DNA of 64,000 nt from Pavona decussata. Its lineage: Eukaryota. Positions 1-64,000 of this stretch are shown piece by piece (within the stretch, counting starts at the first letter, position 1; each line of letters opens with the position of its first letter). The position numbers were made by a program, and so were the translations under genes. Where the stretch lies: NCBI GenBank assembly GCA_977016875.1, contig CDRNST010000025.1, positions 2,542,001-2,606,000 on the forward strand, read 5' to 3'. Under the pieces are notes generated by a model that was not told where the DNA came from, did not search any database, and was given only the letters and a program-made list of their open reading frames with translations.

Positions 1-989
1 ATAGTTTTTAATTGATAATGAGTACTAATATCCTGTCAATTGAGGTCTAAGCCCATGATTAGGAACCTCTATCTGTATTAACTGACAGACGCGAGACAGA
101 TGTAGTATTTTTTTTATTGTTCAGCACTAAAATAATTTTTCCGCATAAATTAAAAGTCACTCAGACTGGTATTTCCCATTTTACTGCTTTCCAATTTAAC
201 CTCAGTTTAAGTTCAGGTGAAAAGTTGAAATATGAAGAGACGAACATAAAACGTACAGGGGTAAAATAAATACAAGGAAAATCCCCTTTTCGTTACTAAG
301 TAATAAATTCGGGAACGAGTACAATGTCTACAATCCATCCTGGCATTTTCGACCGATGGACACTTTGCCCTGATACTCACAATGCTGATAATGTCTCTTC
401 GCGGATGGATGTATCACATCACATGATCAATTTAAAGCGATCGGGCTTGGAGAAATTTTTGTAGTGAACGATACTTGATGTTATTGTCGATCGATCAGTG
501 TAAGGACAATCACAATCAGCAAATTTTCCATGTCTCCGCTGGTGTTAGGTTGTGTTTACAGGATTCTGTGATGTTCGTCCGCAAAGGAAAGCTTTCAGAG
601 GAAAGTAAGCGTTCGTTACCACCAACACTTCTTGTCAGGTGAAAAACCCGTTATATACAACTAACAATTTCTACTAACAAAATTATCAGATTCTCTTTTG
701 ACGTTTGTAAATGCGGGGAGAGAATAAGTCTTTCTGCTCAGAAAGTGTGTTCTTCCTGCCAGGAGTCCAGTCAATAGATACAGTAGAGTGTTCAAGAAAC
801 GTGAAATGCACGAAGGAAGACTAACTTATACGTCAGGGAGAAATTATAAATTTAACCTAGGATGAAATGAGAAGATAAAACTCTCCAACCGTTTCAAACT
901 GTGGTTAAATAGTTACAACGTTTTTTAAAGCATCTACTAAACCATGTGTGTATTATGTATTTTTTTATAACTAATTTCTGCCAGATTAG

Positions 990-1375
990 TACCAAGTGAG
1001 ATTAAAGCACGAGGACCAAGAGCGCAGCTTGCCTATGTAAATGCGTTGAAGACTGGAAAAGTAAAGGTGCACCGTGCTAGAATCATGCTGATAGGCCAAG
1101 ATCGAGCGGGAAAGACGAGTTTGAAGAAATCCTTCTTAGGTCTGCCATTCGACCCTTATGAGCAAAGCACTGATGGAATAGAGGTTGACCCTTTAAAGTT
1201 ACAAATTGACGTTGATCAAGTGAAGAACTGGCAACGAACTGACGAGAAGTTAAGTGTGTCTCAGTTTGCAAACGACCTTGCAAAGATGGTGGCTGCTCAG
1301 ATTGGAATAGATGAAACAAGTGTAAACCCAGAAGCTCAAGATGAACCAGAGGAGATGACATATCAAAAGAATGAG
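990..1375 (+). CDS. Copy 1 exon: Roc N-terminal half
   Basis: tag|TA CCA (phase 1) gives (V)PSEIKARG...IMLIGQDRAGKTSL (P-loop GxxxxGKT) and STDGI (G2). Donor GAG|gttggt. Confidence 0.92.
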
Positions 1376-4300
1376 GTTGGTATCCTAAGATAAGATAGAC
1401 AAGATAAGATAAGAACTTTATTTTGCGTGGCACTCCACTTAGCTAAAAGCTACTTTACAGGAAGCCCACAAATAAACAGATAAAATTACAAAAACAAAAA
1501 GAAAGATAAAAACAAGATGCTTGCTATACTGGCATTACGCGTGATGCTGGGGCTGATTCATTTATTCCAACTGTATGCTTCGCCGATTGATAAAACTATC
1601 CTTGCTAATGGAATAGTTTGAGTCACGACGATCACGTTACGTTGTTTCCCTTGTGTTACGCGACTCAGACTATCAGCGGAAATTTGTGAAACTCCATTAC
1701 GATAACGTAAGCTTCTCAATGACCTCTTTTCAGTCTCGCGTCGTGGTCTAAGACTGTCAAACAAAGCACGATTCCTTCGCCAGGAATTCTCCAATTTCCA
1801 CCGTTTTAAATGTCGGGTGCTTCTTAGAAGTTATTCTTTCGATTCACCGCTTCAAAATGGTGAAATTTCCGTTTGAAAACAGCACACTTGGGTCCACAAC
1901 ATGTTGACAATATGGCGCGACAATTTAATCCGTTTTTAATAAATATATCAAATGATGCGTTGACGTCACACAGGTAGGGGTGAGTGGGTCCCCTCTCTCG
2001 CGATATACGCGACAAGAATGGATTTTGATTGGCCTGCTTTCGTTGAAGACACTCAGAACAATACATCCCGAGTAGGAGAGGGGAGAGTTTAATGAATAAA
2101 TTAATGTACCGATTTGTAGCTACGACGAAGAAAAAAAAGAAATCGACCCGTTTTTAGACACGGTGTGCCCCTTCAGGGCATCCCGCGTAATTAGCTAACA
2201 ATCTAAAATCTAAAAATTTAAAAATGTAATATATCCAGAAAATCCAATCATTCATGTATCAATACATGTGTGAGTACAAATTAAAATTTACAATTTCAAA
2301 AGCTAACCACGATAATAACAATTTTAAAATGCTGCATGACGAATTCTTCTTAAAAATTCCCTTGTACCGGCCATGGCGTGATCGAGTCCGGCAGCGCATT
2401 CCATGTCTTTGCAGCGAAGTACCGAAAAGACCTAAGACCGTACTTGGTGCTTCTTACTTTGGGAAATGAGAGCATGTTTGTGCCCCTTAAGTTATATTCT
2501 GTGTCCTTTACTCTGACATACATAGATAAGAAGGAGAACTTTAAGACTGAAGTAAGGTAACTGTACAATGCAACAACAGCACAATACAACACAATGTAAT
2601 GAATACGTTACCGCCGACACAATGCAATACAGTACATTAATAGTTTAAAGATTTTTGTTTATTATTTTTACCCAATTTGTCAAAGCCTAGTTTAGCAGCC
2701 AACATTTTTTCCTTTATGAATGCTACTACTGAAGTAGCCTGCAATGCAGGCGTATTTTTGGAGCGGGAGCGCTGAATAATCCTTCGTTGCTGTCATCTTC
2801 GGCGAGGAGGCGCGAGAGGGCTGGAGCGATTCAAAAGTGACCCTAAGGGAGAAAACGACTGCTCTCATTTCCTGCCCCCCCTCCCCCCCTCCCCCTCAGC
2901 CTCCTTCAAATACGCGAACTGAATTTATTATTCAGCGCTCGCCCATGAAAAACGCCTGCACTGCAGGCTACTACTGAAGGTTTGTTCCGTTATGTTGATC
3001 AAAGTAAGTTTCTATGATAACGTTGGTAACCAAACTGAGGTCTTATTTTTCTGATCGAATAGTCTGGTTTTACCGCCGCTAAGAAAGATGTGTCTATGGA
3101 GAAAAAATCTCAATTGAATCAGGGGTGTTTACATTATTTGTAAAAGAAAAAAAAGTAAGCACAGAAACTGTTGTTAGTCTATATCGGAACACATTTTTTC
3201 GATTTCAGTCAAGCTCGATGGCCTGAACACGAACAATATGTGCTATAGAAGTACAATGAAACTAAAGGGGCCATAACGGTGAAAACAAACAAACAAACAA
3301 ACAAAAAAAAAAAAGAAACACAAGCAAACAAACAAAAAAAAAACATAACAAAACAGAAAAAGCTATGCATCAGCGTTTGTTTGAAATTCATATTTCACCC
3401 TACTAAACTAATACGTGAATTGACTTCATCAAGCTACTGTCAGGACAGTCATCATAGCGTTGATTACAAACGAAGCACTTCCGAAAGGATGACTTGTATT
3501 GCGAGGGTCTCAAGTTTAAACCTTCCTGATGGATTGCTAACACATGAGACCCTGCTTCAAATCCGAGGCGACCCTTTGGGAAAAAAAAACAAAGTAAAGT
3601 GTTCAANNNNNNNNNNNNNNNNNNNNNNNNNNNNNNNNNNNNNNNNNNNNNNNNNNNNNNNNNNNNNNNNNNNNNNNNNNNNNNNNNNNNNNNNNNNNNN
3701 NNNNNNNNNNNNNNNNNNNNNNNNNNNNNNNNNNNGCGAGTGGCGAAAGTAGTCGCGTTTGCTTTGGTTTCATTCCATCGTACCTTATCTCTAACTAAGA
3801 CCAACTAATAAAACTCGCGTTACTTTTCTTAGAAGAAATACCAACCCTGACTTCTTCGCACTCGTTTTCTCACTCTTCTAAAAAGTTAGATGCATGTTCT
3901 GCCTTCGGATTTTTTTTTTCTTTTTTTGTGTGTGTCATTTTCCAACACTAGCACGTTTATTTTGAATTCTTCTTTTTTTTATGTTTCATTATCTTTATTG
4001 GAAATAACAAGATTACAATTTGTAGTTTTACATTTCAAAAATAAAGTTACAAATATCTCTGGGAGTGCTGACACATATAACGGTTCGTTTGCATTATTTT
4101 AAACCACATGCACACAGTTACACAACACTGGACACATGCACAAAAACGTACACACAAACACAAGTTATAATAGGCATGTTAAATATAGAGTAAGAAAATA
4201 ATGAATATTAAGGGGCAATTTACCTAAATTTGAATGAAATTTGAAGAGGTTTTAAGAAGGGATAGAAGAAAGAAAATGATTTTTGGAACACCAACAGACA

Positions 4301-7300
4301 GTTGATACCCACGCAAGAACACCCCGGGTTGTTAGTGGACTAACTTGGTATCCGTCTATTAATTATTAAATACAAATTCTAATTTAAAACTTCACTAAAT
4401 CTTCAATATTTCTTATTTCTCTTAATTTAACCAATCCTTCTAAAAAAAATACTCCTCCCAAATATATCCAAAAATCACCCAAAAATTTACAAAATACCCC
4501 ACAACACAGATTCACGGGATATTGATAGGGTTTTTGGATTGCTTGAAACGTGAATGAGAAATTGCCATTAAAGCCAGGTCAAGTGGCAGAAAAATGGCGT
4601 TTAGGTGAATTGTCCCCTTAAAGAGATTGAATTATGAAGGGCCTTCAATGCGAAGTTTGAAGGCAATACGTTGCTTAAACTCATCAAAATTGATTTCTTC
4701 TTTGTTCAGTTTTTGACAGTATAGATAATATTTTGCAAATAACAAGCAATAATTAAACTTTTTAAGCGACATATCTGAAGACATCTACAATGACATTACC
4801 GTCGGGATCTGGTTTAAGTTCCGCAATGACCTTCGTGTTAAAATTCCCTTTTTCTATGTTGAAGAAGTATTTGGTCTGCTTCTCGTCTTCCTCCGTCCAA
4901 GGCACTTTAGAACGAAATATTGCCCCTTTTCCTCTAGTGTCATAAATGGCCTGAAGATCGCGTTTCAACCGATTGTATTCTTTTAGTTCCAGGTCGATGT
5001 TTTGAAGGCCATTACTGTTTGTAATCAACGTATCAATTTCATCCAAACGTTTTTGAATGGCTGTTTCCACATTCCTACTCTGCTTAGCTTTGCATTTTGA
5101 TTAACTCCCATTTGAGTCTTTTGTCTAAGTTATTAGGAGCATAAATGTTACAAATAGAACGTTTCACCTTATGAATAATCAAGTTGATGATTACGATCCT
5201 TCCTTCTGGATCACTGAAATGGCTGGTGACGGATAGATCATAAGAAGGGTTAATCAGAATACAAACTCCTTTCTGACGATTGGTCCCATGGGAGAAAAAG
5301 ATACCACCTCCCCATTCATTTTTCCACACTACTTCATCTTTTGGTTCAGAGTATGTTTCTTGTAGGAGATAAAATAAACATTTTTGGCTCTTCAAATAAC
5401 TAAAAGTTTTAAGTTGGCTTTTCAAGCCTCTCACGTTCAAAGAAAGTAAACTGCACTTAGATAAATCTAACATGTCGGAGAAAAAACAATATTATATCAA
5501 CACCTAAAACACAGGTACACAAACAACCCAATAATAGGACGCTAGGCACAAGAACACAAACATAAAGTCTATGAAATCAAGAGGCAATAAACCAACCTAT
5601 CACTACCCTTCGAGCAACAGCCTATAAATCGACATATCCGCTAGACACATATATGCTAATAGTACACTCTTCAAGAATACAGGATAGGTAATAGTAATAA
5701 ATGGCATCCTAGAGTTGCTTTACGTCTTTGATGGAAAGCATTTTCCTTGGTCTCCCCGAAGGGGCCGTTTTGATAAATACTTTCCCATCCAACGACCAGA
5801 AACTTATAATCTTGTCATCTTTCTTCTTCTGTAGAGCCAAGGACATCATTTCCCTTCTGTAATTAGTCAAGTTTTCATTAATAAAGATGCGGTGGTTCCT
5901 TTGTCCGGAGGACAAGGAGCTCGGGAAAATACTTGAGAGGGTTACATTCTTGAGATGAGTGCGAGCTTTGTATAATTTAGTTTTGTCTTTGTGATTTGCA
6001 AATTTAACAATTATTGGCTTTATTCCCTGTTTACTTTATTGACGATGCGATATCTTGATCTTTTCAGCCGTCATTTCCACTCCAACCGCCTCAGCCACTT
6101 TGCACACAATCTCATCGGTCTGCGGGAATGCCGTGTATTTCCACAGAGTTCTTCCTAGAATATTGCTCAAGCTCTTCAAAGCTTACCAGCAATTCTTCAA
6201 TGTTTTGCTTCTGTTCCTTGACGGTATTTTTAACCCTGTTTAACTCGATTTCCAGTGACGCTACGTATGTGTTTTCGTCCTTGAGTTCTTTTTGTAGTTT
6301 AGTGACTGCGCTGTTACTCTTTAAGATTTCGTGTCGAAGCTCCGCAACCTCCTCAGTCAGTTTGCCGTTATCTTTAGCTAATGAAGTAATAGTGCCTTGA
6401 ATAATGTCGATGGCACCCTGAATATTCTTGAGGAGGTTGTGTATATCCTTTAGATTCGGTTCAGCTTCGCCTAATTCCACCCGAAGTGGTTCGTTGCAAT
6501 CAGAAGGAGACTGCCATGTTCAATTGGTCACCACGTGGATGTTTGTGGTCCGGTAAAACAATTTCGTCGCCAGATCCGCGTTCAGCTCGCTTCATACTTC
6601 TTAGCAACAATTCTGCGATTCAAGGAAAATGTTTGATGGACTTCCTACGCATTTTTTCTTTCTATCCTGACTGTTTCACGAAGGGCGGTACGGAGCTCAA
6701 TTACACACGTCCTGCCATGATAGTGGCCCAAGCTCTCTCTCAAGCCTTTCTCTTGTTCGGATTGGATTATTGTCTCGCTTGCCATTGTTATGATTGATCA
6801 CAATGATGACTTTGGCTTTGCTTTAAAAAGTCCTTTTCAAATAGCTGTATTAGACGTAGCAAGGTCTTCTTATGCAAATATCGGGGCATTAGGATTAATG
6901 ATTGCAAGCGAGATTGACTAACAGGTATACAGACAGTATTTTCTAGAAAATACATATTCCTAACGAGTGTCCTTTTTTTTTTTTTGTACTAATAAAAACG
7001 CAAAACGGTGTTATAAAACTGGTTTAAGAGTAGTTTTACCTTTAGAGTCATGTAACAGACCAAGATCAACGATATCGTAACCAATTTTAAAAATTGCTTT
7101 CAGGATCCTATCAGGGACGGAACCACACCTAACTTTGCGAAAGTCCATGAAGCTCAAACTGGGCGCCTCAGCGAGAAAGCAGCTAAAGAATCTGCATTGA
7201 ATTTCGACCCTACTTTGCCTCCGGAGGAATTCACAGATCTTCTCGTTCAACATTTAAAAGGTTTAAATCTGCCAAGTGATTCAACATCAGTGAAAAACCA

Positions 7301-10300
7301 CATGACTCTAGACCTTTGGGACTTTGCGGGACAGCATCTTTATTACGCGTCCTATCCAGTGTTCTTGTCATCACGAGCAGTTTACATGCTGGTGTACAAT
7401 CTCAGCAAAGGACTAAAGAACATTGCTGAGCCCTGTGTCAGACAAGGTGTTAATAACATTCTTTTAAGAAACCCAAATGGCGAAACAAATTTGGAGAACT
7501 TGTTGTCGTGGCTTGTTTCAGTCAGAACCATGTTTTCAGCAAAACCAAATTTAGTGAATGACAGAGAGGAGGCTGGCAAAGAGCCATCTTACCTTCGTCC
7601 CCCTGTATTTGTTGTAGGAACACATGCTGACAAACCTTTCGAGGACATTAAGATAATGGAACAGCTGATCCAGACGGTGCTTTCTCGAAAAGACTTTGAT
7701 GGTCACGTGATCCGGCCATTTTATTCAATTGATAATACGCAAGGGTCATCAGGGGCTGGCGTTCGTGCACTTCAGGAAAAAATGATTGAAGTGTTACAGG
7801 AAGAGCCATACATGGGGGAGGAGATACCACTTCGGTAAGTTTACAAAATAAGAACCAGTTGCAAACTCACGCACTCGGCTTATGAGTGCATTAAAAGCGC
7901 ACATAGTTGACCGTTGTTTTCCTTGATTATTCAGTAACTGAATACCAAGGTGAAAGTTGAGATATCTAGAAGCTGTCTTTAAATTACAATGTAATAGTAA
8001 TAGGGAATGGACGTCAAAAACTTGAAAAGTTGCATGTGGTAGGAGAATGAAAAGGGTACTTTTTCACAGAATTTGTAGTTTCTATTGACAGAAAGCGTAC
8101 CATAAGGGCAAAAACATTCCTCTAATTTACATGCTAAGACAGCTAAAAAGTAAAAGCTACCAATATAATATTTATGTGTTGCATGGATTTGGACTATCTC
8201 CCTTCTTTGCCCTCCAGGTGGTTTAACTTTGAGAAGATCATTAAGGCTTTGATTGCCAAGAAAACGTATTACCTGAACCTGGAACAACTCCAAACCATTA
8301 TCCAGGAAGTGTGCTTTATCAGGAATGAGAACGAAATTGCCACCATGTTGGATTTCTATCACGACCTCGGAATCATCGTAAAACACCACAACACTGTTGT
8401 ACTACAGGCCCAGTGGTTGATTGACGTGTTTAAACAACTCATAACCATCCGTCCTTACAACGAAATGGTAAGAACCTGACAGAATGTTAAGTCTAAAAAG
8501 TTAGCAGCCGCGTGCCTTATTCTTGGCTGCTTTTTACCGTTGGATACCAAGGGGTGTTATCTCGGGGGAAACCCAGCAGGTTAAAAGTTTTCCCAGTGGA
8601 TTCTGAAAGAATTTTTTTGGTTGGAGAGGTTTCAATAATTTTTTTCCATGTGTAACATTTTTTAGAACAATTCGTATTTCAAATTTCTCGCACGATTATT
8701 TAAAAGTCTTGTGATAATTTGCCTTACACATTTCTATAACGACTTTTTTTTTTTGCATTTTGTACCAACCTTTTTTTTTTACTTTTCTTTAAAAGTACGT
8801 AAATTATGATCATCCGGGTGAGTGAAGTCCTGAGAAGGAGTGTTTGGGGTGACTTTGACTCACGTCAAGTGAATCGTGGAACGTCAGTAGGTGGCATATA
8901 TGTCTCTGGTTGTTATCCTGATTGGTTAACGAAGTCGAGATGTTTTTGGCTGTAAAGACTATAAAAAATGATTGGTGCGTTTCGATCCGTCTTTTGTTAG
9001 TCAAAGTCAAAAGGTCCGTGGGTTTATTGTTTGCCTGTTACGTTGACTCCTCGGTTCAAACCATTTACAGTTTTATCTGTGTATGTTACCCGACGAGTAT
9101 TCGCAAACAAACTTTTCGTTCAAGTTCTTCTTAACCCTATCTAGCCCGGGTTTTTTGTCTTCTTCATAGCTTCTCAAGTATAAAACGTATAACAGTGAGA
9201 GTAAAAGGATAGATGTAAGTCTGAAGATGATTCCTTTGAGGTCCGTGGTAAGAATTTATTACGTCACACGAAGCGGGAATTACACGACGATTTCAAAGAA
9301 TTGGTAATCTAGGAACCGCCACCTTAGATGTCTTGATTTCTCCCAAAACCTCAGATTTAAAAAATATGTTAGATGACTTAATCTGCAAGAAAGTTAATTT
9401 TGAAACATTAAAAACCGAAATCTTCCTGTTTCTTAAGGTATCAGCCACCCTTCAGGACCGTCTGCGCGCGGATCGCTACCATATTTGAGGTTTCAACGTT
9501 TTCAAATAGATATGCTTGAGAGCTTTCTTTTAAAAAAAAAAAATCAGAAGAAAATGTTATTTCTGTCGAAAGATATCGGGGGTAAAAGATTTTTTCTCGT
9601 TAATTATCTTAATTGATCGTTGACAAGATCTGTCATTGAACTAGTAACGTGATACCGAGTGCGTGCTTCGAACGACACAACACGTGCGAATTGTCTTCGT
9701 GTTATTTATAGCCTTTAACTCGATATTTAGCGTTTGTTTCGGTGAAAATGCCGCCAAAAAAAAAGAAAAGATCGTGTCCGTTTTCCTCATCGAAACCGAG
9801 AGCGAAAAAGAAATCGAAGAGCGAGTTTGTCAAAGAATGGGCTGCAAAATTGGCAGAGAGCGACAAAGGCTCATTTTATCGGCAAGAGAAGTTGGAATTC
9901 AGAAAAGCGAAAATGCTACAGGACCTACAGTTGCTGAGAGTGCAAGCCGCTCCAAAATTTAGGTTGAAGAACCAGAAGAAGAAAGCCAATTAAGCTCATC
10001 GACCCCATCTGCTGATGGAACGTGGAAAACAATAAGCGGTCGAGCTATCGTATCGAGTGAAATTCTCCTTCAGAAACGGGACGAGTCTGTATCTTGTCGA
10101 TTTTGCCAGGAAAGTGTCCAAGTCGTGGAAAATGTAGCGACTAAGCATGGACTTGGTTCTACCTGGAGAATCCAGTGCGAGAATGAAAGCTGTCCGTCGC
10201 ACAAGACAAATTCTGTTTTTAATTCTTTCGAGAGGAGCAGAGCGTTTGAAATAAACCGGGCCTCAGTTCTTGACCTTCGAGCAATCGGTGGTGGACATTC

Positions 10301-13300
10301 GGCGGCTTCGCTTTCGTTCGTGTTGATTTCGCACTGGTTTTCGGCATCTTTACCAACTTAGCCAACCTTTCAAGAAATAAACACAATATATTTTTATTGT
10401 TACATGAAAAGCGTATTGCTGTTTGTAAATTAAACGATTCCTATGCATGTACATTCACTAACCTCAACAAAAATTTTGTCTTTTGTCCACACGCAGTGTA
10501 ATTAAACTGACTGGAAGCAAAATAGTTATTTCCCGCTGCTTGCCGCGAAAGTTTGTTCCTGTTACATGTTACCTGTCAAAGTCCTATTGTTAAAGAAAAT
10601 TGAGCCCTCTCTGATATCAATCAGAATAAACATTTAGGTGTTATAATCTCATTCCAGGTAGGATGCCGCCAAAAATGTATTTTCTATTTTATCTCCGAAC
10701 GCAAATTTTGCCGATCGACTCGTACGTTTTGAACTCCAAGTCGGCAGCCTTTCAATCAAATTGGCTCAAATTTGGCCAGAGTGATGCCATATATCTCTTC
10801 TACAAAACTGTGTCTGCGAATTTTAATACTCCTTTTGATTTTAAAGCTAGAGCCTTTTTTCCACAGGGAGTGTTGACTAATTGCCTCCCCCAACTTCATT
10901 TGCTAATAAAAGAGAAACAAACGCACTTGTCAAAAATCTGAGACACGGTTTTTTAGTGAAACGTGTTGAGAAGCGAATGCGGTGTCAATTGTTTTCTTCC
11001 GTTTATTTCCGGCGGGAGTGGAACATGATTTATAGAGACGTGTACTTTTACACAAAGCGTTCCAATTTCGAAACACATTTAAGTAAATAGTTTTTGTTAG
11101 TTCAAATGCATAATCTGGAATTATTAAGCTTTTGAAAAATATATGGTTTATAGGGGTTTTTATAAAAACAACTAACGCTACAGCGATCCGCGCGCGGACG
11201 GTCCTGAAGGGTGGCTGATGCCTTAAAACCAGGTCTGGCAAAAATAGGTTGCTATTGTAACATCAAATTCAGTGAGCCTGATTTACCATGCAAAATCGTT
11301 CCCAGATAAATTTCTTGAAAAGCCACATGTACAAACTTTCGTGGCATTTGTGCAAAAATTAAAAAAAGTGTTGTTTGCTTGAAGTGCATACTTAACTTGT
11401 TGCGATCATTTTCTCGTTTTTTTGTCTTCCACCTTTGCACCAGATAAAGGCAAATTTATACAGATCCTTACCAACAAAAGAAGATCTGTCTGTACTTTTT
11501 CCCCAGGAGTGCTATAGCCTTAACGAAGTGTTCACATTCTCTGCTTCTCATAACCAGGCTTTCCTATAGTTGCCTGAATGCTACAATAGGCTATTTTCTG
11601 AAACAAATTGCCGTCATTCTTCCCGAATTTGGCCCGACGTTCCCATGAGGTAAGTCAGGTGGTTGTCTATGTGTCTTGCTTCCTTTTTCTTTTTCTTTTT
11701 TTTTTTTTTTAACAATTTTTATTTGCATACATGACATGAGATTTACAAAAGTGAACACTATTAACATTACTTACAATACACAGGGTACTAACCACAATGA
11801 CTATATCTACATTGTTAACAATACTTACAATACTTACAAAACTGAAAGTGCTTACAATGTTCACACTAGTTTCGGGAATAACGCTATGTCTTTTAGTGAA
11901 CACTTTTTCTTATTTTTACTAACAAAACATTACTTTACATCAAATACAATTTTTACAAATTTTACAGTGATTCCGTACAAAATGATCAAGCTAGAAAGCA
12001 ACTGCTAAAGATTCTTACTAAATTAAAAGAAAAAATATATATATTTATATAAAGCAATTTTTAAGGAAGAAGAGCTGCCCATCTAAGTCTAAAATTTGAC
12101 AAACACTTATTAGCGACAGCAATCTGTTGTAGAGTCTGAATTTTATCGGAAAGTCGTAAAAGGAAGCTCTGGAAACTCAGTACACCCCCGCCTTTGCTTG
12201 TACAGAAGATGTAGTATTTTGCTATGAGTATTGAGTAGTTTAATGCCTGCCAATATGAAGATTTTTCGAAAAAGCCATAAAGTATATTACTTTGATTTAA
12301 AGAAAGCTTAACATTGGTCTTTTGTAGCCACCAGTCTTGAAATGTATTCCAGAAGGAGTGCACTTCGGTGCAAAGGACGAACAAGTGGTATAAGGTTTGT
12401 CTCTCATTTTTGCACAGAGGACAGATGTCACTTTCGGCTATTCCATCGCGGTGTAAGCTAAATTGGGTGGGTAGTATGTTATGTATAATTTTATACTGAA
12501 ACATCACTAGTTTGACCTCTTTTGTAATTTTAAACGGTAACTGGTATACTTTGTCAAGTGTTTTTTCGGTAAAGCCATGTCTCAAAATTTTATTCTGGGA
12601 GGTTGGTGGTTCAAATGTATCTATTAAGATTGACGAGTATATAGAGCTAGTGGACAAGTTGGCCACGGAGTTTTCTTCAGCGTTGGTATGATTCTGCGGA
12701 GTTACTGTTTTTTTCCACAAAGATGGAATGGCATTTAACAAACCATAAAATGTTGTAAAGGGCACCTGTAGGTTATACAAAGTCTTAAACTCAGAGTAGC
12801 TGCAGAGATTTCCGTGTCTGTTAAATAAATCACATACGTAGACGATGTTGTGGGAAAACCATCTTTTGTAGAAAACTGGTTTCTTATCAATTAAAATATT
12901 GCGATTGTTCCAAAGAATTTCATTTTTAAAGTCTACCTCATTTTTCTTCGACTTTTTGAAGTCATGCCAATACAACAGAATTGAACGGTAGAACGGGGAA
13001 AGGTTTTCCAGCGAGAGCATCTTAGGATCGTAATTGCATCTGGTTAAGAAAAAGAGGTTACTGTGTTGTTGGACCATAACATCAGGAATAATTTTCCAAG
13101 AAGAGGGTACCTCGTTTTGGATTCTTTTAATCCACGCAATTTTCAAAGCTTTCTCCATGATTGCGAAGTCGCACATTTTTAACCCGCCTTTCCTTCTTTC
13201 TCCTATGATTGTGCTTCTTTTAATTTTCGCGGGCTTGCCGTCCCAGATGAAATTAAAAGTAATCTTATTTATTTGTTCTACATATTGCTTGGGGACATTT

Positions 13301-62000: not shown

Positions 62001-63562
62001 TAAATTATTTATCTTGGTGATACCGACGTCATACCACTTTTTTATTTTTTATTATTTTTTTTTTTTATAAAAAAACAGTTTTTTTTCCTACTAGAATTTT
62101 CCTATTATTCCACAGTATTTCGTTTTTAGGATTAGTTTTGGAATCGATGCCCGTTGAGGGAAGCTTATCATCAAGGTTTAGTATATCTGTTGTAAAGTTG
62201 CATTTTGTTAGAAAGACGAGACCACCATATTTGTGCAAGAGCTGGTTAGTTTGTATCGTTTCATATTTTGTGTAATGAAACAAAGAAGTGTTAGCTAAAT
62301 TCAGTACTCTCTATTCACAACTTTCTTTTGAGACATTATGATCATGTCACAAACTCGGACTTCTTGCTTTATCAGGTGTTTCAAACACCTGGAAACAATA
62401 AAAGCGCTTAGCCTGCGGCCTCATGCTTTCATCTGTTTCTCGGTTTCTGGAACCCCTGATTATGATAAAGCACCTGAAGTCGCTTTTGAAAGTACCTGAA
62501 ATTCAGCTCGCGTCAGCCATTCATAATTTAGAAATTTTTCAGCGAGTAGTATAATATCTCTGAAACGGACCTAGATATAAATGAGATTGACGTATAAACT
62601 CAACTTGCTGTGTAGCACATTACTAACAGGATGCACTGCGGGTGTGCATATTTCTCAGCGTATATTACTCATCAGTAAACATGCAAGAACGTTTCCTTGG
62701 TGTTTTTAGATGTCAAAAAGGCCGCGAAAGAGCGTCTCAAAAGGACCTTCTTATTGATGTTGTTTTGATTTTTGACAGGAATCTAGACATTCCAAGTTGT
62801 GGAAAGACATGGAAGAAACAGGCGTCCTTAGTATGCAACTTGTTGAACACGTATTTTCGAAGTATTCTCAGCAAGGCGTACCCAAGGAGGACATTTTGAA
62901 TATGATGGAGCATTTCGGATTGATAGTCAAGTTTGCGAGGTCTCCAAGTGATATACTCTACTTTGTACCAGCGCAACTGAAGACGCCACCTAAAGCCCTT
63001 CGAAAAATGGAACCTTCGTTGTCCGACCCATGTCCACTGTATCTTCACTTTTTGGAGGGTTTTGTTCCTCATGGCCTCTTCTTTCAGCTGGGGTCAAGGT
63101 GTTCTCGACGGTGCCCCGCTAATAGATTCACGCAGCCTCCGAAATTTTATGAGGGAGCTGCGACGTTCTTTCTCGAAAAAAAGTTCAGGTACCAACTGAC
63201 TCTTTTGTGCAAGAAAAGGTTCATCAAGGTTGTCCTGAAAAACCAGACAAAGCAAGACGATCAACTCTCTCGGACTGAAAAAAAAGAGGTAGCAAGTTTG
63301 GTGCGATCGTTTCTAGAAGGTGAATTAGAAAATATGAAACAAGAGCTGCCGTGGTTGAACAATTTAAAGTATGAATTGTGTGTAGAGTGTCCTTGCTGTC
63401 CGGAGGAAGAAACCAAATGTGGAAACCACAGTCAAGTCTTTTGTGCACATGAAGACTGCATAAGCCTTGTCAAAGTTATGCCTAGAGGGAGTTTAAGCTG
63501 TTGCTCAATTTGTTGTCAAACACCGAGCCTCCCCAGACTGGAAAAGTGGTTCTCGGCAAAAG
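48807..63562 (+). CDS. ROCO gene copy 2 (3'-partial): TPR-Roc-COR-Cys-rich. Exons 48807-50001 (contains gap), 51750-52135, 54224-54954, 59777-60026, 62779-63562
   Basis: Phase-compatible GT-AG junctions and no stops in the visible exons. Exon lengths equal those of copy 1. Confidence 0.87.
48861..49700 (+). repeat. Coding tandem repeat, 7 x 120 bp
   Basis: TGGTC(G/T)TA...CTTAAAGACTACCAAC recurs at exact 120-nt spacing (48903, 49023, 49143, 49263, 49383, 49503). The seventh unit is diverged. Confidence 0.97.
51750..52135 (+). CDS. Copy 2 exon: Roc N-terminal half
   Basis: About 17 substitutions in 386 nt versus 990-1375 (counted by eye). P-loop intact. Confidence 0.9.
52838..53444 (-). mobile_element. 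CR1/L2-type LINE 3' fragment
   Basis: (CAA)n tail with AATAAA on the minus strand. Remnant HSYSTRFS...SFSRVGAKIWNGIP. Absent at copy 1 position 3478. Confidence 0.8.
53625..53697. repeat. (ATTG)n microsatellite
   Basis: About 18 imperfect ATTG units. The homologous position in copy 1 is the N gap at 3607-3735. Confidence 0.9.
54224..54954 (+). CDS. Copy 2 exon: Roc C-terminal half
   Basis: WDFAGQ and VGTHAD motifs, same splice sites as 7104-7834. Confidence 0.93.
55318..59753 (+). mobile_element. Academ-superfamily DNA transposon, decayed
   Basis: TAG...CTA termini, about 190-bp TIRs, and 3-bp TSD TAT at 55315-55317 and 59754-59756. Empty site at copy 1 8195-8197. Confidence 0.88.
56488..59209 (+). 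pseudogene. Academ transposase pseudogene (XPG/PIN-like nuclease region, Cys-rich C-terminus)
   Basis: Fragments GNWSLHL..MLPYFAAAGH..YAKS, VLDGGALLH, VVFDG, GDADLMIV, GDDTDLLVLL and LPPT..RVY.QVQQW..DWGW occur in shifting frames with stops. Confidence 0.85.
59777..60026 (+). CDS. Copy 2 exon: COR N-terminal part
   Basis: Near-identical to 8218-8467. Confidence 0.92.
60577..60630. repeat. Perfect 26-bp inverted repeat with 2-nt spacer
   Basis: GAGTGCTATGGCCTTAATGAAGTGTT-TT-AACACTTCATTAAGGCCATAGCACTC. Confidence 0.95.
60978..62270 (-). mobile_element. Decayed 3' fragment of an L1/Tx1 LINE
   Basis: Poly(T) at 60978. Remnants EILWNNRKIL, LKVPFTTHYGL, TSSIYSSLL..FVPPT and a CPIC knuckle are homologous to 12061-13100. 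Confidence 0.85.
62779..63562 (+). CDS. Copy 2 exon: COR C-terminal part plus Cys-rich segment
   Basis: Same 784-nt length and splice sites as 18328-19111, with an open frame. Confidence 0.9.
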
Positions 63563-64000
63563 GTGAAGGCGATGTGTCCTATTAATGCTTAAAATAAGAT
63601 GAGCTCTAGGTCAGGTATTGAAATGATTAAATGACAGGTTACTGCCAATCAGTTGAAAGGTACCAGGAAAAGAGCTATCTTCCCAGTGCTCCTACTTGTT
63701 ATAATTAATAACAAGAACCGTTATCAACGAAACTGACAGGTTCATGCGTACGTCCGCTGTGAGTCGTATATTTGCGAGAACAAGCAATACATTTAATCTT
63801 GATTGTGATGAATTAGGTATCCCTAAGTCTTATGAAGTTCCCAAAGTGCACTACTCTTTGACATTGTCCGGCGCATGAATACTGATAATTAAGAAATCAG
63901 AGCTTAACGCAAGGTTGATGGCCATAGCAACCAATTTGACAGGGAGCAGGGTACAACGGTGAGGTTTCAGATTCAACAATGATTTCTTTCCCTCCTGGGC

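Follow-up and report, generated by a model that had tools for sequence, protein, structure and literature searches.

Two units of a probable birth-and-death array of coral ROCO genes that join TPR, Roc-COR, OTU and Death modules

Proteins with a Roc-COR core are known mainly through LRRK2 and DAPK1, the latter a human ROCO protein with a calmodulin (CaM)-regulated kinase, ankyrin repeats and a C-terminal death domain. The view that the ancestral role of Roc-COR was that of a sensor-coupled conflict switch has its basis almost wholly in comparative genomics. Here, we analyze a 64,000-nucleotide (nt) stretch of the 602-Mb genome of a eukaryote, the reef-building coral Pavona decussata (the window: G000:C25:2542001-2606000, about 38% G+C), which we consider likely to hold two units of a tandem birth-and-death array of ROCO genes, with each intact unit encoding one multidomain protein. 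Among the closest published systems, Roc-COR combined with repeats and variable effectors, as well as GT4, have been interpreted as counter-invader systems by Kaur et al. 2021 (PMC8195603), who also report that GT4 has expanded to more than 500 paralogues in Acropora and list, in supplement 20, the amphioxus combinations LRR+sGTP+OTU+GT4 and DED+DED+OTU+GT4+DEATH. ROCO proteins have been presented as candidate immune receptors by Teng et al. 2024 (PMC11378527), who point out that in Trichoplax Roc-COR is accompanied by TPR, CARD and death domains, and coral innate immunity genes have been described as amplified by tandem birth-and-death (Noel et al. 2023, PMC10236652).

Comparison of the window with itself by BLAST identified two paralogous blocks that are collinear over positions 80-19149 and 50865-63602, with 78-94% identity. 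Together with the Pfam matches, this collinearity bears out the two paralogous units that had been proposed in an earlier annotation made from the letters of this DNA alone (hereafter, the sequence-only reading). Within the window, copy 1 extends over 990-30156 and copy 2 over 48807-63562, both on the plus strand, and the end points given in that reading coincide with exon borders, 990 with the acceptor of Roc exon A (RocA) in copy 1 and 63562 with the donor of the COR exon in copy 2. The domains it named were all recovered with Pfam, namely Roc, COR-A, OTU and Death in copy 1, and TPR, Roc and COR-A in copy 2. The exon borders were derived from canonical AG/GT sites conserved across copies; the exons were searched singly against profiles and databases. 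The exons in the window are the following.

990..1375, plus strand: copy 1 Roc exon A, phase 1 to 0; Pfam Roc on 971-1390, E=3.9e-6; P-loop GQDRAGKTS
7104..7834, plus strand: copy 1 Roc exon B (RocB), phase 0 to 2; Pfam Roc on 7056-7835, E=3.8e-7; G3 WDFAGQ, G4 GTHAD
8218..8467, plus strand: copy 1 COR-A exon, phase 2 to 0; Pfam COR-A on 8147-8476, E=3.6e-7, profile positions 1-84
18328..19111, plus strand: copy 1 COR exon, 784 nt, phase 0 to 1; the last part of COR-A, then COR-B and a Cys/His-rich tail that closes with LEKWF
24344..24412, plus strand: copy 1 linker exon X1, 69 nt, phase 1-1; homology to X2, AG and GT retained; in-frame TAA
24850..24963, plus strand: copy 1 linker exon Y1, 114 nt, phase 1-1, Ser/Lys-rich; RNA joints, open frame
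25696..25764, plus strand: copy 1 linker exon X2, 69 nt, phase 1-1, basic; RNA joints at both ends, open frame
25941..26054, plus strand: copy 1 linker exon Y2, a duplicate of Y1 by local tandem duplication
27236..27486, plus strand: copy 1 OTU exon 1 (OTU1), phase 1 to 0; Pfam OTU on 27169-27495, E=3.9e-4; catalytic Cys in DNEGSGNCMF; RNA joints at both ends
28065..28338, plus strand: copy 1 OTU exon 2 (OTU2), phase 0 to 1; Pfam OTU on 28113-28343; catalytic His in HLHEHHYVSL; TGA at 28110-28112
29885..30156, plus strand: copy 1 Death exon, acceptor phase 1, ending in TAA; Pfam Death on 29818-30153, E=1e-13
48807..50001, plus strand: copy 2 TPR exon, from a conserved ATG; Pfam TPR_12 on 48789-49790, E=2.1e-28; donor phase 1 if the frame holds across the assembly gap described below
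51750..52135, plus strand: copy 2 Roc exon A; Pfam Roc on 51749-52159, E=2.5e-6; 64% identical to residues 424-555 of the coral protein P0388
54224..54954, plus strand: copy 2 Roc exon B; Pfam Roc on 54137-54955; splice sites present
59777..60026, plus strand: copy 2 COR-A exon; Pfam COR-A on 59673-60035, E=1.2e-6; splice sites present
62779..63562, plus strand: copy 2 COR exon, 84% identical to the copy 1 exon; phase-1 donor leading out of the window

Inspection of 184 kb (the window, 40 kb upstream and 80 kb downstream) revealed six units, all on the plus strand, with the module order (TPR)-RocA-RocB-CORA-COR-OTU1-OTU2-Death in each. In a genome-wide exon search, at least 10 COR+OTU1 exon pairs were found on the contig that carries the window (C25), between 2.33 and 2.69 Mb, and 4 more on contig C144; the two copies seen initially are thus part of an array of at least 10 units. 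The extension that the sequence-only reading had suggested produced the OTU and Death exons of copy 2 downstream, and upstream it produced the TPR exon of copy 1, which is present as expected, albeit broken. Past the window, copy 2 continues through a GT4-conflict exon, a linker, OTU1, OTU2 and Death, all in open frames, as listed here in window coordinates.

65194-66441 (L005:1194-2441), plus strand: copy 2 GT4 exon, 416 codons, phase 1-1, intact single exon
71756-72006 (L005/L006), plus strand: copy 2 OTU1
72589-72862 (L005/L006), plus strand: copy 2 OTU2
75339-75619 (L005/L006), plus strand: copy 2 Death

The GT4 exon matches the profile PF20706 ('GT4 in conflict systems') with 299 bits (E=6.6e-89, L005:1100-2488) over positions 2-384 of 385. 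The modules and their order had been correctly perceived from the window alone, and this exon, which is present in half of the units including copy 2, had been missed. Copy 4, located some 41-57 kb past the window end, contains every module of the composite that had been assembled from the two window copies and no GT4, and in both copies 2 and 4 all exons have open frames with intact motifs and splice sites. By COR identity, the units on C25 fall into three subtypes that are interleaved along the contig.

Type A: 84-86% COR identity to copy 1, GT4 present; includes copies 0, 2 and 3
Type B: 92-100% COR identity to copy 1, GT4 absent; includes copies 1 and 4
Type C: 52-53% COR identity to copy 1

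Because copy 1 is of type B and copy 2 of type A, the window copies are not equivalent, and the composite fused the 3' half of one type with the 5' half of the other. The array can be described as one chassis that comes with or without GT4, with differing Death subtypes and with differing numbers of TPR units. OTU1-like exons number at least 78 across the genome, and GT4 exons at least 101. A separate contig (C64, 0.27-3.18 Mb, minus strand) carries more than 35 OTU1-like exons, and 3-4 kb upstream of many of these a GT4 exon is located on the same strand; the genome-wide exon search found no COR match near them, and this cluster probably represents a second large array, with units of NACHT-GT4-OTU type.

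The assignment of the modules relies on profile matches, conserved motifs and structural models. Roc (PF08477) is detected on both Roc exons of both copies with 27.5-31.5 bits against a cut-off of 27, and the G-motifs GQDRAGKTS, WDFAGQ and GTHAD are intact. The short COR-A exon scores 30.6 bits against a cut-off of 35.3, over profile positions 1-84, and stays under the cut-off because the domain is split over two exons. For the exon 18328-19111, there was no Pfam match, and its AlphaFold model (predicted local distance difference test, pLDDT, 87.5) has COR regions as all of its best 28 PDB matches, from C. tepidum Roco (3dpu/3dpt), LRRK1 and LRRK2; by this model, the exon is predicted to fold as a ROCO COR domain, which places COR directly C-terminal of Roc. 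The four Roc-COR exons span the Roc-COR region of full-length homologues without a hole, and RocA of copy 1 is collinear with the Roc domain of P0009, P0019, P0021 and P0388. In the last approximately 60 codons of 18328-19111, residues C204, C207, C214, H217, C222, C227 and C242 are near-invariant across 84 relatives, ahead of the conserved LEKWF; judging by this residue pattern, the tail looks like a zinc-binding knuckle added to COR-B.

The Asp, Cys (GNC[ML]F) and His (HxHYVSL) motifs of the OTU domain are present in copies 1, 2 and 4 and are near-invariant in the homologue alignment, in which the entire OTU module is strongly conserved among coral lineages. Against the OTU profile (PF02338, cut-off 23.3 bits), the two OTU exons reach 21.4 and 25.0 bits. 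The fold was assessed on a homologous contiguous domain from Porites (P0215:1045-1226) that aligns with the window exons. The model of this domain (pLDDT 78.8) has OTU deubiquitinases as all of its top 40 PDB matches, the nearest being OTUD5, OTUD3 and OTUD1 (Foldseek probability 1.0, template modelling score 0.5-0.69, 14-22% identity); A20 comes in 41st place and the 50 matches listed do not include OTULIN, so that the comparison with A20 and OTULIN drawn in the sequence-only reading gives way to one with the OTUD proteins. A phmmer search of the OTU domain against PDB sequences returned no match. Taken together, the motifs and the model identify this module as a predicted OTUD-type cysteine deubiquitinase.

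The Death exon matches PF00531 with 51.6 bits against a cut-off of 22.6 (E=1e-13), and its nearest solved sequences, by phmmer against PDB, are the death domains of RIPK1 (E=3e-7) and FADD (E=4e-4). In the TPR exon of copy 2, TPR_12 reaches 98.7 bits over 6 stretches, and the array at 48855-49634 has an exact period of 120 nt (40 residues) with units 77-85% identical; there are about 7, 10 and 7 units in copies 2, 4 and 5, respectively. The ATG of this exon is conserved in copies 4 and 5 and aligns to the N-terminus of P0388. No exon has a Pfam match to NACHT or NB-ARC, and given that the switch is Roc-COR, these genes do not belong to the NLR/STAND class even if they may work like NLRs.

Several lines of evidence indicate that the modules of a unit belong together and that there is, very probably, one gene per unit. 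The donor and acceptor phases are consistent at every junction in both copies. All module boundaries (TPR/Roc, COR/linker, linker/GT4, GT4/OTU and OTU/Death) are in phase 1, and the introns within domains are in phases 0, 2 and 0 in Roc-COR and 0 in OTU; the phase-1 introns between modules point to cassettes that were gained or lost between units. The combination of TPR, Roc-COR, OTU and Death proposed from the window is corroborated by the same order and strand across units, by these phase-1 boundaries, by RNA joints that link the linkers with OTU and Death, and by gene models of another coral, Oculina patagonica. Among the latter, P0388 (LOC144666872 isoform X3, 1776 amino acids (aa), RefSeq, uncharacterised) is a TPR-Roc-COR-GT4-OTU protein with the same order as copy 2, to which it is collinear exon by exon from the start of TPR through OTU (50-69% identity by tblastn); in this protein, only 12 residues separate TPR from Roc, and the alignment starts at residue 17 on the TPR exon. 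This collinearity supports the links from TPR to Roc and from COR through GT4 to OTU across species.

The RNA evidence comes from contigs of public runs, found with the COR exon of copy 4 and placed on 24301-30300 of the window. In runs X1, X3 and X7, depth is on exons and there is none in introns, whereas in run X15, 29 of 30 bins are covered, introns included, and the joints described here are missing; accordingly, the first three runs behave as RNA and X15 as DNA. Joints with GT..AG borders were observed for 24963->27236 (6 contigs, 3 runs), 24963->25696 (Y1->X2), 27486->28065/7 (3 runs) and 28338->29879 (2 runs), the last of these in frame and 6 nt upstream of 29885, in a contig only about 91% alike. 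In addition, a 149-nt RNA contig is identical to the Death exon of copy 1 at 149 of 149 nt. These joints add small linker exons between COR and OTU that had been missed, and they move the start of OTU2, previously set at 28131, to 28065, in agreement with the homologue alignment. An acceptor at 28131, which would avoid the stop, was considered and rejected, given that the joints reach 28065/7 and that the alignment is contiguous only with 28065. Similarly, an acceptor of the COR-A exon at 8157 was discarded for its wrong phase; it is the conserved CAG at 8215-8217 that yields the phase 2 of the donor, and the acceptor CTCCAG/GTGG is kept in all copies.

Both linker exons of copy 1 are doubled by a local tandem duplication at 24112-26522 (24112-24570 versus 25427-25922, and 24839-25446 versus 25929-26522). 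No RNA joint was seen for linker exon Y2 among the contigs placed on 24301-30300. Besides the forward joint Y1->X2, the RNA contigs at the linkers include a joint that goes back 915 nt, which we read as reads of paralogues placed on the best-fitting duplicate.

Several points weigh against the reading of each intact unit as a gene for one receptor-like protein. The runs were taken to be RNA by a guess at their type. Over the OTU exons, the contigs deviate from copy 1 at 4-8% of positions and hence stem from paralogues, so that the joints reflect the splicing of the family, not that of copy 1 itself. The joints are confined to the linker-OTU1-OTU2-Death portion, the region covered by the contigs, such that the splicing check proposed in the sequence-only reading succeeded for this portion; in this genome, the joints TPR->Roc and COR->linker are what we infer, and with them a transcript that would be shared by TPR, Roc-COR, OTU and Death. 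With Death placed before OTU in P0207 and missing after OTU in the P0388 isoform, the C-terminal order varies among species. Several units are damaged: a 4.8-kb insertion splits OTU2 of copy 0, RocB and GT4 of copy 3 are frameshifted, and two further type-A units have a TAA in GT4. In copy 1, OTU2 with its RNA-defined acceptor contains an in-frame TGA (28110-28112, between the Cys and His boxes of the OTU domain) where copies 2 and 4 have TGG; a TAA is read directly from the sequence in the frame of linker X1; and the TPR exon, upstream of the window, consists of approximately 3 repeat units followed by an approximately 3.9-kb insertion before the last 19 nt and the donor. Finally, the immune or cell-death role, which would match the published interpretation, is putative, as are the ligand and the signalling partners.

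Some of these points would be accommodated if the locus were a row of two to three neighbouring genes (TPR only, Roc-COR, and OTU-Death beginning at the linkers) that were duplicated together as a block and were merged by gene predictors in other corals. This arrangement is compatible with the lack of TPR->Roc and COR->linker joints among those observed over 24301-30300, with the long, transposon-rich intron (5-8 kb) between COR and the linkers, with models outside RefSeq that look chimeric, such as P0207, and with P0387, which is without TPR and most of Roc. However, phase 1 is common to the COR donor, the linker exons and the acceptor of OTU1, there is no conserved start codon upstream of the linker and OTU1 acceptors, and the TPR exon of copies 4 and 5 ends in a phase-1 donor with no stop codon. 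Moreover, the RefSeq model P0388 runs unbroken from TPR to OTU in collinearity with copy 2, and independent RefSeq and Tara models from Pocillopora and Porites join Roc-COR to GT4-OTU. We therefore regard a set of separate genes as improbable and retain the reading of one gene per unit.

About as improbable, in our estimate, is that the locus is mostly a graveyard in which the units in the window are pseudogenes, and the transcripts are residual or originate from a few intact paralogues elsewhere. Apart from the damage to copies 0, 1 and 3, this possibility draws on four intronic transposon insertions in copy 1 and, in copy 2, on a 4.4-kb insertion 23 nt from an acceptor and one exon with an assembly gap. 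The open exons of copies 2 and 4 and the exact match of an RNA contig to the Death exon of copy 1 argue to the contrary, as does the fact that live and dead copies are normally mixed in birth-and-death families. Furthermore, where the reference has A at 28112, all placed contigs of four public runs, including those of the DNA-like X15, have G (TGG), so that the TGA may be a private allele or an error of the consensus or assembly, or else the site is covered only by paralogues. Given the TGA in OTU2, the TAA in X1 and the disrupted TPR exon, copy 1, the only copy to show OTU and Death within the window, is probably transcribed but decaying, and the mixture of live and broken units fits the birth-and-death evolution described for coral tandem arrays (PMC10236652).

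The insertions and assembly gaps that bear on the integrity of the two window copies are as follows.

3607..3735, no strand: assembly gap in the RocA-RocB intron of copy 1
49791..49982, no strand: assembly gap in the non-repeat tail of the copy 2 TPR exon, with just 19 nt of exon remaining before the GT donor at 50002
3907..6750, no strand: repeated element of 2.8 kb, intronic, in copy 1 only; positions 3906 and 6751 map to the adjacent copy 2 bases 53888/53887
9963-10358, plus strand: Mutator-like fragment in an intron of copy 1
12061..17059, minus strand: long interspersed nuclear element (LINE) in the COR-A/COR-B intron of copy 1, absent from copy 2
19268..20617, plus strand: open reading frame (ORF) of a Harbinger-type DDE transposase in the COR-to-linker intron of copy 1; 449 aa; DDE_Tnp_4, E=6.6e-33
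55318..59753, no strand: transposon-like insertion of 4.4 kb, in copy 2 only, ending 23 nt upstream of the COR-A acceptor

The flanks of the first gap, 3479-3606 and 3736-3906, align to 53445-53582 and 53718-53888 of copy 2, with 135 nt between them compared to 129 N in the gap; by these collinear flanks the gap is intronic, and no coding frame hinges on it. The 19 nt that follow the second gap are identical to the last 19 nt with which copies 1, 4 and 5 end their TPR exon, read there in a frame that leads to a phase-1 donor; copy 2 would share this phase if its exon is continuous and in frame across 49791-49982.

Transposon insertions private to one copy break the collinearity of the paralogues. 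The element at 3907-6750 has at least 60 genomic copies with 90-97% identity, and a part of it (4208-4622) forms a tandem array with 915-nt spacing on contig C194. The LINE appears to be intact, with an ORF for endonuclease and reverse transcriptase (796 aa), a zf-RVT ORF (482 aa) and a coiled-coil ORF, and matches RVT_1 (E=8e-41), Exo_endo_phos (E=3.6e-12) and zf-RVT (E=4.7e-8) in Pfam. The insertion in copy 2 is bounded by perfect 13-nt terminal inverted repeats (TAGTCCAGTCATC / GATGACTGGACTA) and has longer imperfect inverted repeats (55350-55513 versus 59567-59731, 93%); its ORFs have no Pfam match, and, being 23 nt from the COR-A acceptor, it may disturb the branch point. The spacer between the units (36548-46438) contains two inverted duplications, 36548-37444 versus 39456-40354 (96%) and 40351-41241 versus 45553-46438 (92.5%), and a (CCTT)n microsatellite is located within an intron of copy 4.

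Under the model that we favor, an intact unit would encode one protein of about 1,500-1,850 residues that would comprise, from the N- to the C-terminus, an array of 40-residue TPRs, Roc and COR, basic linkers, an optional GT4, an OTUD-type OTU and a RIPK1/FADD-like death domain. The TPR array would be the ligand sensor, and Roc-COR would serve as nucleotide switch and for dimerisation. If the TPRs bound a non-self or danger ligand, the state of Roc-COR would shift, and this shift would expose or cluster the death domain, leading to the recruitment of death-domain adaptors; OTU, along with GT4 where present, would then act on ubiquitin conjugates or other targets, either at the complex or on the invader. 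By analogy with known systems, a combination of sensor, switch, death-fold adaptor and enzymatic effectors appears to be a reasonable functional reading. A far less probable version of the function is that the family serves allorecognition (colony fusion or rejection) or the control of algal symbionts rather than pathogen sensing, as the highly variable tandem array with its differing TPR numbers and the inclusion of allo-incompatibility in colonial cnidarians among the roles of apoptosis-linked systems by Kaur et al. (PMC8195603) might suggest, while GT4 and OTU are more commonly taken to be counter-invader effectors.

A more ambitious proposition, which we put forward as tentative and rather doubtful, is that corals possess a second class of intracellular receptors, switched by a GTPase and parallel to NLRs. 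In this proposition, GT4, OTU and Death cassettes would have moved between NACHT and Roc-COR proteins by phase-1 exon shuffling, the TPRs would provide fast-diversifying specificity, and OTU would edit ubiquitin on a death-domain complex nucleated by the same protein, amounting to a self-limiting 'ROCO-some' without a vertebrate counterpart. Either way, the array is a compact natural experiment in a reef-building coral, with GT4 present or absent, Death subtypes, different TPR numbers, and intact copies next to broken ones. An OTU with clear catalytic residues, a RIPK1/FADD-like death domain and the Roc P-loop are reagents for the question of whether a GTPase can replace a STAND ATPase in death-fold signalling, and the array may be a marker locus for the genetics of coral disease or allorecognition. 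Nothing is overturned by these findings: RefSeq already contains predicted proteins of this architecture from other corals, and the concept itself is in the published literature.

The statement in the sequence-only reading that no characterised protein with this architecture was known holds for the literature, where our search turned up no paper describing or testing the TPR-Roc-COR-(GT4)-OTU-Death proteins of corals; it does not extend to databases, given that the architecture already exists in RefSeq coral models (P0388, P0387) and related ones have been catalogued by Kaur et al. 2021 (PMC8195603). The closest of these models, P0388, is from another coral, and its identity to copy 2 is too low for a one-to-one orthologue. 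The domain order of copies 1 and 4 recurs in P0387 (COR-OTU-Death; Oculina patagonica LOC144659573, 844 aa, RefSeq) and in P0396 (OTU-Death; JGI, 965 aa), with OTU 57-66% and Death about 50% identical to those of the array; these models differ in being without TPR and most of Roc, and their COR part is only about 25-33% identical. An apparently closer architecture, P0207 (Roc-COR-Death-Death-OTU-SPOC), was discounted as probably the product of merged gene models. With BLASTP, the TPR exon had no match in a first set of relatives; its match to P0388 came from tblastn. A search of the whole library with the COR exon yielded mostly single-exon ORFs, along with full-length anthozoan ROCO proteins whose ends are shuffled: their N-terminus carries NACHT, kinase, HEPN, Neuralized or Ank, and their C-terminus Death, caspase or TIR. 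In a separate search with this exon, there were only single-exon ORFs of genome assemblies and no transcripts; a Logan contig (L013, behind P0278) that had been considered as a transcript is unspliced genomic DNA of a paralogue or relative.

Beyond these models, the ROCO core together with GT4-OTU is shared with LRR-Roc-COR-GT4-OTU proteins of Pocillopora and Porites (P0203, P0200, P0204, P0215, P0390), which have LRR in place of TPR as their sensor and lack a Death domain. In Pfam scans, P0203 of Pocillopora verrucosa is LRR-Roc-COR-GT4-OTU and P0215 of Porites evermanni is Roc-COR-GT4-OTU; for P. meandrina and Porites, LRR-Roc-COR-GT4-OTU is taken from a precomputed Pfam listing with domain order not rescanned, and such a listing, with order unchecked, also puts Ank, Roc, COR, GT4 and OTU together in the amphioxus protein P0398. 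The amphioxus LRR+sGTP+OTU+GT4 combination (Kaur et al. 2021, PMC8195603) likewise resembles the coral units in having a GTPase core with OTU and GT4, and has LRR rather than TPR and no Death domain. The bacterial AP-GTPase (Roc)-COR conflict systems treated in the same source (PMC8195603) combine a repeat sensor that varies with Roc-COR and an exchangeable effector at the C-terminus, which can be GT4, and occur as multiple paralogues with different effectors; they differ from the array as prokaryotic single-ORF systems with no intron-phase cassettes, and OTU is not named among their effectors in the part of that text considered here.

Compared with characterised proteins, the array resembles DAPK1 in having a death domain C-terminal to Roc-COR, and kinase-Roc-COR-Death relatives of the P0019 type were found, which are different genes. 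DAPK1 has no TPR, OTU or GT4 and is a single conserved gene, not an array; in the coral units, the TPR and Roc exons have neither a kinase exon nor an Ank exon between them, which speaks against a DAPK1 orthologue. With OTUD5/DUBA, OTUD3, OTUD1 and the bacterial and nairoviral OTU proteins, the OTU module shares the fold and the Asp/Cys/His motifs at a sequence identity of only 14-22%. The GT4-OTU effector cassette itself, together with tandem expansion in corals, is shared with the NACHT-type NLRs of Porites and Pocillopora (P0391, P0393-P0395), among which P0394 of Pocillopora verrucosa is GT4-OTU-NACHT, and the Porites proteins P0391 and P0393 contain NACHT, GT4 and OTU by precomputed Pfam listing. 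These proteins have a STAND ATPase (NACHT) as their switch instead of a Roc GTPase, and P0394 carries the cassette at its N-terminus; the occurrence of the same cassette on NACHT proteins lends support to the parallel with NLR logic that was initially drawn from the window sequence.

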